Source: Entomortierella parvispora E1425 (Eukaryota > Fungi > Mortierellomycota). From it: a DNA stretch of 64,000 nt. The DNA is taken from NCBI GenBank assembly GCA_020891255.1, contig BQFW01000002.1:3162001-3226000 (forward strand), given 5' to 3'. Positions 19,305 through 23,661 of this stretch are shown in pieces. The stretch's first letter is position 1. Each line of letters starts with the position of its first letter. A program made the translations under genes and the position numbers. Under the pieces are notes generated by a model that was not told where the DNA came from, made no database searches, and saw only the letters and a list, made by a program, of their open reading frames with translations.

Positions 19305-20697
19305 TGCACGCACCCCTCCTTACAGCAGGTGATCCCCATGACGAACTTTTCCACTCTGGAAATGGAAAACTTGCCTGTCGCCACAGGCGACTCTTTTTTT
19401 TTTTTTTTTTTTTGGACCTGTCCCGCAATCAAGATTCCCACCTCCATGGCGACACTTGAGAGATCCAAAACGACTCCGCTGCCATTGAATAAAGCAGATA
19501 TGGCGGTATTGATCAGCATTAGCTTCCGACGGACGATTGAACCCGTTTTTGGTTTGTGAAAATACATCTTTTTGAAGGGCGTGGAACGAGAGCTCTGAAA
19601 GAAAAGAAATCAGCGGAGAGGCGTGTGGTCCAAGTCTGGACTGCTGGGGACAGATGAAAATGGGGCCAGTGTCAGGGCAAGTATTTTGGGGGATCCAAGG
19701 TGGTGGTGACCCCATACTCCTGCACAGAGATATCCTGGACCTGACGATGCAAAGGCAGTCACTGCTCATCCATTGACAGGACCAACTCAGGGTTGGCGAG
19801 CGACGGGTATAGGGTTGTGCAGTTTGCCTATCGTGGACGAAGCGAACTAGCCTGATGACGCAGCGTCCTCGCTTGCGGCTCGAACAGAGCTCGTCTGATA
19901 CACAGAAGGACTAGGGGAGGGAGAGGAGGACATCGAGGACGTTGCCAGAAACATGCATCCATACATGGCCTGTTAATTTTCATCTTGAGACAAGATCGTC
20001 GCCAGCAGAGACAGAATCTACGAGAGCTGCTGGGACCCATGGGATGCACTGGTTCGAGCTAAAGACCTGAGATATAACCTCATGAAGAGTCTCGGCTAGA
20101 CACAGAAGTCTGGTGCAGTGTGGACAAGGCAGAACAGGATGGCATTCGTCGCCATGACTTTCAAGGCAAAGAACCATTCGTTAATCAACCTGCAACATCA
20201 CAGCTCGCGTCTGGACCAAGTGGGCAAAGTCAATGTGATACCTAGAGATTCGAGCGACATGACAACGAGTCTTTTTCTACTCCCAAACGAAGTATTAAGC
20301 TTCGGGGCACGGAACTCTGTCTAAAATCCCCACTTTACTCGTTGATAGTGCTTGGGTTGACGAACAAGAGAATACCATGAACACTGCTTCCTTTTTTGGG
20401 GGGGGGCAGGTTGGTTTTGGGGTGAGATAGCTACCTGGTGCGCGGAGACCATAAAGTATCCCGTTTTCAATGCCGCTATGAATGCCTCTTAATCCTGCAT
20501 GACTTGGCGGGCCGACAAAACCCACTCACGCGACTCCTTTTTTTGCTAACAATTGTGCCTGGGTTGAGTCCTCTTTAGGCGACCAGTTCGACGGCGGTGG
20601 CCTGTTGCCTCTCGTCGTCGAGTATCAAAAAAAGAGTGTATTTATGATGATCTGGACCCTTCTGATTCCCGCACATGGCACCTTGGAGCCAAGAAGC

Positions 20698-20743
20698 AAA
20701 AAAAAAAAAAAAAAAAAAGACGATGGATCCCAGATCAGCAAAA
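20698..20743 (-). terminator. Pol III terminator T-tracts downstream of tRNA-Glu
   Basis: T4 a few nt past the tRNA 3' end, then a T21 run on the minus strand. Confidence 0.6.
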
Positions 20744-20748
20744 GATAT

Positions 20749-20820
20749 TTCCCAATCCGGGGTTCGAACCCGGGCCGCCTCGGTGAAAGCGAGGAATCCT
20801 GACCACTGGACCAATTAGGA
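20749..20820 (-). tRNA. tRNA-Glu (anticodon TTC), 72 nt, intronless
   Basis: Reverse complement TCCTAATTGGTCCAGTGGTCAGGATTCCTCGCTTTCACCGAGGCGGCCCGGGTTCGAACCCCGGATTGGGAA. Acceptor TCCTAAT/ATTGGGA, anticodon loop CTTTCAC, T-loop TTCGAAC. Confidence 0.96.
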
Positions 20821-20953
20821 TGAATTTCTATTTTTGGTTGTGTTTCTTTTTATTCATAACTCTATCTCTCAACACGGAAATCCTCGTTTTTCGAAATGAA
20901 GTTCCCTGCGATCCGCCGCTTTTTTTTCCTCCCCCCCGCCTCCCCCCCCCCCC

Positions 20954-20972
20954 ATCTCCCCCAGAGATTCCC
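20954..20972. repeat. Left target-site duplication (19 bp, ATCTCCCCCAGAGATTCCC)
   Basis: Exact direct copy at 22081-22099, immediately after the A-tail. Confidence 0.9.
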
Positions 20973-22080
20973 GGCCTGAGGAACCGGGTACCCGTGCTGG
21001 CGGACACGCCTACGCAAAAGTACATGCACAACTGGAGACCGGACCTATATGAGGATGACTACTGCCGAGTCTGTGAATCCAATGTGGAGGACACAAACCA
21101 CATATGGAGGTGCCCAGAAACGCTGACGAGTCAATGCGAAGGCTGGGAAGAGACAATGGAGTTGGTAACCAGCCTTGGCAAAACACTGTGGGAGCGAGCA
21201 AAGAAAAGCTGGGAGAGCGAGAAGAAGAAAGCAGAGGAAGATGGCAAGGAATTCAAGAAGAAGGAACCGACGTTTTCGGACGAGACTGTGGACAGCTTTT
21301 GGACGATGCTGATGGATTATTTCCGAGGAGCAAGAAACATCAAGGCACAAAACCTACTGGACGACGATATGGAAAGAGAGGAAGTGGTCGATCTCGGATC
21401 ACTCGGATGGCGACCATGGACGGTCATCGACGCCTACCACGGACTGGCGCCGCTATTCCTGAAAGACAAGTTCCAGACATTGTTCTACACGACCCAAGAG
21501 ATCGCGAGCATCATGGCGGACAGGTTTATCAAAAGCATCGAGGACTACGGCCGAACAGGGATTTGGAATCCACGTTGCAAAAAGACTGTGGACTGGGAGA
21601 AGTCTATCGGAGTTACTGGTGTGAGCAAACGTACCAGGCCTGAGGAACCGGGTACCCGTGCTGGCGGACACGGAGGTAGCAACAGTAACTTTGGTAACTT
21701 TAACCGGGACAGGTTTGATGTGACAAGGATGAAGAGACTCCACAAGGCTGCGGACAAAGATGTCTTAGATGAATACCAAGGAAAGCGCGTGTTGAACGTC
21801 ATGGAAAGAACAGGGGGAGTGAAGTACTTCTTGGAAAAGGATCTCGGAAACTAGTGACGAACGAGCATGAAAGGCCACAGAGGGGACTGGACCTGGCCTT
21901 GCTGTAGCAGTGTTACGAAACCAGGGTGCATGGGCCGTCATAATAGACGGGTTGTGCAATGCAAAAGCATTTTATTTAGTCCGTTTCCCTTGGGTGGAGC
22001 AGGCGCACCTGCGTATGTGTACTTACAACTAACAGACAATAAACCCCGTACCTGTGAGGGACCCTTTGACAAGAAAAAAA
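20973..22080 (+). mobile_element. 5'-truncated non-LTR (L1-clade-like) retrotransposon, 1.1 kb: ORF2 C-terminus with zf-RVT-type zinc finger, 3' UTR and short poly(A)
   Basis: Stop-free frame to 21854 containing PT...RPDLYEDDYCRVCESNVEDTNHIWRCP (CxxC-x8-H-x4-C). 3' UTR of about 226 bp with AATAAA, ending GACAAGAAAAAAA, flanked by a 19-bp TSD. Confidence 0.88.
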
Positions 22081-22099
22081 ATCTCCCCCAGAGATTCCC
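22081..22099. repeat. Right target-site duplication (19 bp)
   Basis: Identical to 20954-20972. Confidence 0.9.
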
Positions 22100-23661
22100 C
22101 TTCTCCCTTTATTTGGAACCGTAGAACTGCCCCTTATTTTTTTGGAGCGAGTCCTCCCCTCCTTGTAGAGCCGGCTGGGTGCAAGAGAACACAGAGGACG
22201 CCGTAATAGCTTCAGTTAACTTTATCTTTTTTGGAAGGACAAGACAAGGATCTCCAGACTGCAGATGCGTGTCCTGGACACAATATCATGGCAAGCGGAC
22301 CTTGAGCATCATGGAAATAACAGGAATAATTTGGTATAATTGTGTTTGAAAAGACCTCAGGGAACAGAGTATGAGATGTTACTAGGACGAAAGGGTTTGG
22401 CTTTGTCGGGGCAGGATCGTTGACTCCGCCTAGGGGGTTATACGTCGCCAGTCCTCAGATACCGAGAGAAGGCATTTGGCACTATGGCATCATACTCAAC
22501 CTCCCACACCATAGTTTTTTCAGGAAAGGGGCAAGCATCTCTCGTACTGCCGTCCCCCTTGCCCACCTATTGACACTTTTTCTAGGCCCTTCTCTCTGTT
22601 GCGGTCTCGGTTTGTCATCAGCTTATTTACTCAATAGCACGGCAGATACTTCCATTCTTGGCTTTGAGAGGCGATTTGCGCGGCGACTACCTTCAACGAG
22701 AAACACAAAGGACCGTCTGAAGGTATCACATCTAACTGCATCATCATCAGTTCTTACCACACACAAAAAAAAAAGTGCTTTAGGCGCAATCTTGTCTTCA
22801 AATTTCTGTTCCTGTGGTACATCACCGACAGACCAACATCATCACCACCACAGCTCCTGAACCCCTAATTTGACATCCAGGACGGTCTCCTGTCCTGAAG
22901 TCCGTGGCCATTTGTTTGTGTGTGGTGTGAATGATAATTTATCGACCGGGTCAAAGAGACCCTTCTCTTCTGTTTAATTATACCGCAACGAGTTGTGGCA
23001 TCTGCTGCACAAAGATATGAGAGTTGAAGCCAGCCGGATCTCGCAGGTTCGACCAAGTTGTAGATAATTTAGTCCACACTCCATTTCTATGCATCAACAC
23101 GGCAAATAACGTTGGAAAATAAAAATAGGAGACAGGAATACATTCCAAGTCGAATCATGAACGTCTTGTAGAAGAGGAAGAGGATCTGATATCCATCCTG
23201 ACAGTTGGAAACAACGTACCTTTTGACATTTCAGTAGAGGAAGACGTCCCCATAGTTCGGGAACCCATATTCGTCATTGAGCATGCTAGGATGTACCAGA
23301 ATAGCTCAATGTCGCGACAATGCGCGTAATGAACGCGTTCATCAGTGAAAATCGCTCTCTTTGGCATGGTGTTGGATTCCATGATCTCTGGGTAAAAGAT
23401 ATGTAGCGTGAAGTGTTGTTATGATGTAGGATGGACTGAGACACTTGACAACGAAGGAAAGTGGGCGAATCTTAAAAAAGTTGCACATTTTTCGGGTGCA
23501 GCTGGAGGGTGGGCCCAGGCAGCACCAGGGACAAGTAGGGTGGAATGGCTAGAGAGAGAGGTGAGGCAGGGGGCATTGAAAAGCTACTCAACAAAGAGAA
23601 AGGGATTGTCGCCTGTCTGTCCCTCACTACTCCTTGATCTCGTTCCTGTTGTGTGATCTCA

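Follow-up and report, generated by a model that had tools for sequence, protein, structure and literature searches.

A LINE family in the fungus Entomortierella parvispora with copies set head-to-head at a narrow distance upstream of tRNA genes

Genes that RNA polymerase III (Pol III) transcribes serve as safe harbours for several retrotransposons with long terminal repeats (LTRs), among them Ty1 and Ty3 of Saccharomyces cerevisiae, DGLT-A, Tj1 and Ty3-like elements of Yarrowia. The same harbour is used by the long interspersed nuclear element (LINE) TRE5-A (formerly DRE) of Dictyostelium discoideum, an element of the type with an apurinic/apyrimidinic endonuclease-like domain (APE), two open reading frames (ORFs) and an A tail, whose insertions lie upstream of many tRNA genes, always 5' end to 5' end with the tRNA (PMC3159450), and for which docking of the ORF1 protein on TFIIIB is backed by experiment (PMC5006619, PMC5911963). 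Two non-LTR elements that carry RNase H and are unrelated to the TREs, Pp_NLTR-B of Polysphondylium pallidum and Dp_NLTR-A of D. purpureum, also lie upstream of tRNA genes (PMC5006619). Here we describe family A, a LINE family of the soil fungus Entomortierella parvispora that very probably targets tRNA genes, starting from a copy in a 64,000-bp stretch of strain E1425 (contig BQFW01000002.1, positions 3,162,001 to 3,226,000; hereafter the window, with positions counted from its first letter). In the literature searched, LINEs with this habit are reported only from social amoebae, and no published fungal LINE targeting tRNA genes was found there, as a first-pass annotation of the window had supposed.

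According to ARAGORN, the 64-kb window holds one tRNA gene, tRNA-Glu(TTC), on the minus strand and with a TTTT run on its 3' side; the copy of family A stands upstream of it. The first-pass annotation, made from the letters of the window, had put the tRNA 5' end at 20820, the start of a 19-bp target-site duplication (TSD) 134 bp upstream of it and the start of the element 153 bp upstream, in head-to-head orientation (i.e., the element's 5' end faces that of the tRNA, and the element points away from it). ARAGORN bore out the first of these positions and a repeat search the others, and all the coordinates given proved correct (Table 1). The TSD, ATCTCCCCCAGAGATTCCC, is a direct repeat that is 100% identical on the two sides of the element, which is 1108 bp long, 5'-truncated and A-tailed. 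The flanking sequences (20200-20748 and 22100-22700) are both single-copy in the genome, and the arrangement is therefore that of one simple insertion.

Searched with the window copy at the DNA level, the genome yielded 46 matches, which have the 3' end in common and differ in their 5' ends, and 31 of the roughly 40 copies in the 38.9-Mb genome were placed relative to tRNA genes by their flanks or coordinates. (The genome announcement gives 38.66 Mb, 19 contigs, 192 nuclear tRNA genes and 11,641 coding sequences [CDS]; PMC8759367.) As many as 22 of these 31 copies lie upstream of tRNA genes, representing at least 15 anticodons, and 22 of 22 are head-to-head. Thirteen copies start 135-157 bp upstream of 13 tRNA genes with 10 anticodons, that is, genes for Glu, Thr (three), Gly (two), Arg, Asp (two), Ser and Lys, an intron-containing tRNA gene and one that was not typed; if short out-of-order 5' pieces (see below) are counted as part of the element, the distances at L015 and L018 become ∼108 and ∼131 bp. 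The intron-containing gene, beside a 3.27-kb copy, was missed by ARAGORN in its default mode and has an Rfam match of 42 bits. The other nine copies lie farther out in the same orientation; eight of them have been displaced by later tRNA-directed insertions (Table 1), and the ninth, L020, is an old copy at most 299 bp from its tRNA gene, with a spacer that is unexplained. With 192 tRNA genes, the chance that a random insertion falls in the right orientation is 1.2e-4 for a 50-bp window and 0.37% for the region within 1.5 kb, and the corresponding binomial probabilities are about 3e-43 for 13 of 31 copies and about 7e-47 for 22 of 31. The proposal of a LINE that targets tRNA genes, which the first-pass annotation had made from a single insertion, is borne out by these counts; random placement of the other copies, or a target DNA sequence shared among them, would have spoken against it, and neither was found.

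The family is an APE-type LINE. Its copies have no LTRs, end in ...TTTGACAAG(A)n, show 19 different 5' truncation points and are flanked by TSDs of 9-21 bp. A full-length copy, whose recovery the first-pass annotation had proposed, is present 149 bp upstream of a tRNA-Gly gene; it is ∼8.2 kb long, is bounded by a 20-bp TSD, GCAACCTTCTTGATGTTCGA, and encodes an APE, a reverse transcriptase (RT) and an RNase H in addition to ORF1. The ORF1 product is 602 amino acids long, with a CX2CX4HX4C (CCHC) knuckle and no Pfam match. An AlphaFold model of it contains three folds resembling RNA-recognition motifs (RRMs) in residues 128-390 (predicted local distance difference test [pLDDT] 70-87), and a Foldseek search with the model matches multi-RRM proteins (E about 1e-10); judged by the knuckle and the model, ORF1 encodes a nucleic-acid-binding protein. 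The start of ORF2 overlaps the stop of ORF1. Its product, ∼2000 amino acids long and 100% identical to the hypothetical protein EMPS_01762 of E. parvispora, consists in order of the APE, the RT, a charged linker of ∼330 amino acids (acidic, then basic), the RNase H, a CX2CX8HX3C knuckle and a C-terminal domain. Pfam recognizes Exo_endo_phos (1.5e-10), Exo_endo_phos_2 (5.5e-7), RVT_1 (4.3e-20) and, between the RT and the CCHC knuckle, RNase_H (4e-11). A PDB sequence search gave L1 ORF2p and R2 as best matches, and PDB and ESM Atlas together show a generic LINE RT only. The order APE, RT, RNase H, C-terminal CCHC defines the clades of I, Tad1 and LOA type. Judged by this order, family A appears to fit these RNase H-bearing clades, not L1/TRE. 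No intact autonomous copy of the family was found in this assembly.

The window copy (20973-22080) is a dead copy of this autonomous family. Its ORF2 remnant, described as free of stops by the first-pass annotation, is indeed open from 21009 to 21854, up to the natural stop of the family, and holds the CX2CX8HX3C knuckle and the C-terminal domain; being 5'-truncated, the copy is non-autonomous. A Pfam search with the remnant alone gave no match, the domains being visible only in the full-length copy. At the amino acid level the remnant is 97% identical to the L002 copy, and at the nucleotide level 70.5% identical to ORF2 of the metagenome relatives described below. The A7 tail occupies 22074-22080, and an eighth A could equally well be the base with which the TSD begins. 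Overall, the window copy is 95% identical to the full-length copy of the genome; in the coding part 17 of 843 bases differ (2%), with a ratio of nonsynonymous to synonymous change (dN/dS) of 0.22, which we take to mean that it stems from a slightly different source lineage and that the divergence is mostly not the result of decay after insertion. The identity of the two TSDs (19 of 19 positions) stands as first described, but the argument that the insertion must be recent because they are identical is unsupported as a means of dating; moreover, since identity to the full-length copy reaches 99.6-99.9% in other copies, the window copy is not demonstrably the youngest insertion. Weak repeats at 22243-22324 had hinted at an older, stacked remnant behind it, a candidate that was dropped (tblastn E 1.8).

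The first 36 nt of the window copy are not collinear with the element. They duplicate an internal segment and join the rest at 21009 through a 1-nt microhomology (a single G), and collinear copies carry other sequence upstream of the position equivalent to 21009. The simplest reading is that, ahead of 5'-end joining, the RT switched template into a palindromic region, CGGGTACCCG. This palindrome (21637-21672 in the window; position about 733 of L040:656-1842) is a hot spot within the element: L014, L015 and L016 are 5'-truncated at it (reference positions 732-739), the window copy and L018 bear out-of-order 5' pieces from its region, and besides the window copy two copies in all have short out-of-order 5' pieces. 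The pattern suggests that the RT stalls and switches template at the palindrome.

Distance from the tRNA gene and direction relative to it fix the insertion site, independently of the local DNA sequence. The clear TSDs are mutually unrelated (ATCTCCCCCAGAGATTCCC, ATTATTTTAATGCTTGGC, GCAACCTTCTTGATGTTCGA, (A)CCACGCGGCT, ATTCTGAAGCTCGTTATT, GTCGTTCCCGC and ATCAAATTACTGGAAGACCTA) and share at most a weak bias to begin with AT (four of seven). The inverted repeat ATCTC-n5-GAGAT, to which the first-pass annotation had drawn attention, is present in the window TSD; it is not a general feature of the target, as other TSDs lack such a palindrome, and it was dropped as a candidate target signal. The low complementarity noted at the priming end is confirmed, in that the primer end of the window site offers a single T to pair with poly(A). 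At L013, a copy of another LINE family, X (see below), inserted first, with the TSD ATTAAGGGTG and its junction 111 bp from a tRNA-Arg gene, and a later family A insertion lies 37 bp within the X copy, 147 bp from the tRNA gene, so that the TSD of the family A copy is X sequence. In a sample of 17 tRNA genes that is biased towards genes bearing insertions, 12 have the palindrome (T)CACGTGA one to three times at about -50 to -100 (Table 1), against a background for CACGTG of 0.007 per 150 bp (three in 64 kb; p about 8e-23); GCCACCAA(A) frequently comes after it, in one orientation or the other, and the palindrome may be an upstream promoter or boundary element of E. parvispora tRNA genes. CACGTG was considered as an anchor from which the distance is measured and was dropped, being absent at the window tRNA-Glu gene (a motif scan of the spacer 20821..20953 found neither CACGTG nor GCCACCAA), at L038 and at L042, yet the distance there is unchanged.

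When the C-terminal 450 amino acids of ORF2 were used to scan JGI metagenome contigs, two of these, L041 and L042, proved to carry intact relatives of family A; a scan of viral contigs found none. Protein identity to family A is 65-66% in the C-terminal part and 68-69% for the matching whole proteins P0002 and P0003, and the ORF1 proteins of family A and its relatives are only 36% identical. L041 consists of element throughout and has no flanks. In the 12.8-kb contig L042, the relative is intact (ORF1 of 621 and ORF2 of 2031 amino acids), and its 5' end, at L042:224, aligns to position 2 of the E. parvispora element. The start of this relative lies 147 bp upstream of a tRNA-Glu(TTC) gene on the opposite strand (5-76), head-to-head, and a second, truncated relative follows directly behind its A tail in the same orientation. 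The window tRNA-Glu gene and 31 bp upstream of it recur on L042 at 96% identity. As read from this one metagenome contig, the placement rule appears to have been kept among relatives in a second species.

We consider it highly probable that family A is a LINE that integrates by target-primed reverse transcription (TPRT) at sites set by distance and direction from tRNA genes, probably steered by the Pol III complex. Taking the order of the nicks from the standard TPRT model, the first nick would fall where the TSD borders on the tRNA side, about -129 to -137 (134 bp in the window), on the tRNA-sense strand, and cDNA would be primed from it with the A tail pairing little or not at all. The second strand would then be cut 10-21 bp farther upstream, giving rise to the TSD and leaving the 5' end of the element at about -135 to -157, facing the tRNA. 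For the choice of site, we infer that the docking site for the particle of element RNA and protein is most probably the Pol III complex (TFIIIB, TFIIIC or Pol III) or the chromatin boundary set up by that complex, which would parallel the binding of TFIIIB by the ORF1 protein of TRE5-A in Dictyostelium.

A number of points weigh against this reading. ORF1 has no recognizable docking domain, and the AlphaFold model of the C-terminal domain of ORF2 (pLDDT 49) is too poor for a fold search. A young LTR element interrupts the sole full-length copy at ORF2 codon 1716. This 7.66-kb element has 168-bp LTRs that are 99.4% identical and the TSD ACAAC, and it is unrelated to the tRNA-adjoining Ty3/gypsy element described below. 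Six copies (L012, L023, L024, L030, L057 and L066) have no tRNA gene or other Pol III gene known to Rfam within 1.5 kb. Among them is a young copy, L012, with 96.7% identity to the full-length copy and a clean TSD of 11 bp; off-target insertion thus does occur, and targeting is not absolute. At L016, and likewise in L021/L022, a duplicated pair that looks subtelomeric, the locus ends in a long X copy that extends past the fetched flank. L025 stands beside a tRNA-Arg(CCT) gene with a 58-nt intron that ARAGORN calls when introns are allowed and that lacks Rfam support, and was counted as probable only. Finally, nine short matches (C5:1305100, C10:917232, C5:1873724, C2:2027705, C15:35423, C12:2065801, C5:1322021, C11:327125 and C1:2391053) were not inspected.

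Random insertion with survival only at harmless sites upstream of tRNA genes would do without any targeting, and both the density of genes in this genome (11,641 CDS in 38.7 Mb; PMC8759367) and the location of some copies elsewhere would suit it. Selection cannot, however, yield a distance peak 20 bp wide or 22 of 22 copies in one orientation; many different tRNA genes have been hit, though the oriented 50-bp windows make up ∼0.012% of the genome, and very young copies (99.6-99.9% identical) already follow the pattern. We therefore give almost no credence to an explanation by selection only, which the distance and orientation statistics effectively refute. An endonuclease specific for a motif upstream of tRNA genes, for which one might point to the conserved motifs found there at many genes and to the AT start of four of seven clear TSDs, would have to account for the same distance at the window, L038 and L042, which are without the motifs, and for a family A copy at the canonical distance inside family X sequence. 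Segmental duplication of tRNA-plus-element units would likewise have to account for tRNA genes of different identity and for the single-copy flanks in the window, and TSDs and flanks are unrelated among copies, contrary to both ideas; we regard the pair as scarcely tenable.

The main rival holds that the element reads chromatin, namely, that it recognizes a fixed feature of a positioned nucleosome or accessible boundary ∼147 bp upstream, with no contact to a Pol III factor. The 5' junction at 135-157 bp and the first nick at about 129-137 bp are indeed near one nucleosome length, and at many tRNA genes the first 100-120 bp upstream bear the conserved motifs and are free of family A insertions, as would fit a protected zone with an accessible edge. 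Yet family X, in the same genome, keeps to a different distance (TSD about -101, junction at -104 to -124), which points to a distance set by the element, and the strict orientation requires an asymmetric cue; on balance, we think a pure read-out of chromatin unlikely, while taking it seriously. Steering by the Pol III complex could be combined with an insertion distance encoded by the element itself, each LINE family having its own first nick (about -101 for X, about -130 to -137 for A) and that of family A being kept in another species. We put this forward tentatively, as a possibility we would not yet favour; the different distance of family X argues somewhat for it. The 330-amino-acid linker, the C-terminal domain of ORF2 or the helical tail of ORF1 could act as a protein ruler, docking on the Pol III complex and placing the cut at one nucleosome length from it. 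If so, the ruler would be a new and possibly re-usable means of steering TPRT to a safe site in the absence of DNA sequence recognition.

Family A shares its genome with other retroelements that adjoin tRNA genes. Family X, the second LINE family found upstream of tRNA genes in head-to-head orientation, has junctions 104, 111, 114 and 124 bp from tRNA genes and one at 153 bp; its ORF remnant comprises the end of an RNase H, a KKLHGMLPT motif and a CX2CX8HX3C knuckle. It resembles family A in this signature (KKLHGMLPT... plus CX2CX8HX3C), in its RNase H, in orientation and in stacking upstream of tRNA genes (at L034, three X copies are stacked upstream of one tRNA-Asn gene), and differs from it in distance (104-124 bp, with the one at 153, versus 135-157 bp) and in its C-terminal domain, where the two are only ∼20% identical. 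An LTR retrotransposon of Ty3/gypsy type with 608-bp LTRs (gag, CCHC, RT, RNase H, integrase) has an LTR edge ∼15-18 bp upstream of four tRNA genes, a Ty3- or DGLT-A-like placement, so that in this genome both LTR elements and LINEs take aim at tRNA genes. Two other loci, G000:C1:513794-514573(-) and G000:C2:3485642-3487996(-), represent additional LINE families, with long open frames of 1773 and 2361 amino acids.

Some loci show features of their own. L021 (C14:2240989-2244263) and L022 (C6:13369-16643) are ∼99% identical over the 1.5-kb flank compared, have opposite orientations and each lie within ∼22 kb of a contig end; the pair looks like a subtelomeric duplication, in which a family A fragment abuts an X copy tail to tail. 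The tRNA-like sequence at L025:2553-2775 shows a clear B box, GGTTCGAATCC, and has directly behind it a weak match to a C/D-box snoRNA (snR79, 40 bits, below the gathering score), with which it may form a tRNA-snoRNA tandem. At C11:326844-327336(-) there is an old copy resembling family A, 73-80% identical, that lies on its 5' side 105 bp away from a tRNA gene's 3' end (C11:327441-327513(-)); judged by coordinates alone, this is the opposite arrangement.

Table 1. Coordinates of the window features, of family A copies placed directly upstream of tRNA genes and of associated elements (TSD, target-site duplication; UTR, untranslated region)
Feature	Position or locus	Strand or orientation	tRNA gene	Distance from tRNA 5' end to element	Basis or remark
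tRNA-Glu(TTC) gene	20749..20820	-			ARAGORN; 5' end = 20820
Spacer, 133 bp, uninterrupted, between tRNA 5' end and target site	20821..20953				Sequence and motif scan
Left TSD, tRNA side	20954..20972	+			Direct-repeat search; 19/19 identical
36-nt extra 5' piece duplicating internal 21637-21672	20973..21008	+			Direct-repeat search; junction versus collinear copy L002
ORF2 C-terminal remnant, 281 codons and natural stop	21009..21854	+			ORF list; alignment to relatives
3' UTR ending ...TTTGACAAG, then A7 tail	21855..22080	+			Sequence; ∼20 other copies end alike
Right TSD	22081..22099	+			Direct-repeat search
Family A, window copy	20973..22080	head-to-head	Glu(TTC)	153 bp
Family A	L031/L002	head-to-head	Thr(CGT)	153 bp
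Family A, full length	L039:470-7497 then L040:656-1842	head-to-head	Gly(GCC)	149 bp
Family A	L038	head-to-head	intron-containing tRNA	146 bp
Family A	L011	head-to-head	Gly(GCC)	142 bp
Family A	L013	head-to-head	Arg(TCG)	147 bp
Family A	L015	head-to-head	Thr(AGT)	137 bp
Family A	L018	head-to-head	Asp(GTC)	152 bp
Family A	L019	head-to-head	Thr(AGT)	135 bp
Family A	L026	head-to-head	Ser(AGA)	139 bp
Family A	L028	head-to-head	Lys(CTT)	149 bp
Family A	L029	head-to-head	Asp(GTC)	149 bp
Family A	C4:198513	head-to-head	not typed	157 bp
Intervening family X copies	L008, L010, L014, L034, L019b				L019b also has a younger family A copy
Intervening 608-bp solo LTR	L009, L035
Intervening complete Ty3/gypsy element	L036
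Family X copies	L016:1-1467; L034:7967-9560; L013 1465-1501 and 2031-2112; L008:1282-1453; L014:1982-2448				L013 on the reverse strand
Ty3/gypsy element, complete	L036:3101-9244
Ty3/gypsy element, solo LTRs	L009:2256-2863; L035:7522-8120
Ty3/gypsy element, fragment	L011:2061-2173
LTR element splitting the full-length family A copy	L032:2298-9955 (= C2:2893797-2901454)
tRNA upstream regions with CACGTG	L031, L039, L013, L018, L019, L026, L028, L029, L008, L014, L034, L020

An independent fungal lineage would offer a second natural case for studying the way in which the particle of a LINE locates a transcription complex and gauges its distance from it. Several features make it useful, namely, the RNase H and long linker, a distance ∼3 times larger and about one nucleosome length, and sister families with different distances in one genome, in a host family, the Mortierellaceae, that is culturable. 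Placement of cargo at a fixed harmless site with no reading of DNA sequence is relevant to safe-harbour gene insertion. For annotators, these findings explain the stacks of retroelement fragments upstream of many of the 192 tRNA genes.

Among known systems, Ty1, Ty3 and their like are LTR retrotransposons that integrate finished cDNA by means of an integrase, a process wholly different from that of a LINE. The stretch used by Ty1 upstream of tRNA genes includes the -150 region, as does that of family A, but is broad and extends up to about 1 kb (PMC5911963), whereas Ty3 inserts at the transcription start site. Within the fungi, the Zorro elements of Candida are APE-type LINEs with biased targets (poly(A) tracts for Zorro3, subtelomeres for Zorro1/2), and none is reported to target Pol III genes (PMC7175516). 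NLTR-A and NLTR-B share with family A an RNase H domain and a location upstream of tRNA genes; their hosts are amoebozoans, and their distances from tRNA genes, about 4 bp for NLTR-A and 39-64 bp for NLTR-B (PMC5006619, PMC5911963), are shorter than the 135-157 bp of family A. The comparison with TRE5 drawn in the first-pass annotation holds for the orientation (PMC3159450); it fails for the TRE5-type distance and for an ORF2 without RNase H. Like family A, TRE5-A, the closest of the known systems, forms stacks in a compact host genome, in its case that of an amoebozoan and not a fungus; it inserts about 50 bp upstream of tRNA genes (40-54 bp; PMC5911963), and the TRE ORF2 consists of APE, RT and a zinc finger and lacks RNase H (PMC5006619), whereas that of family A has an RNase H and a long charged linker. 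Family A would thus work like TRE5 without, judged by domain order and distance, being a member of the TRE5 family.

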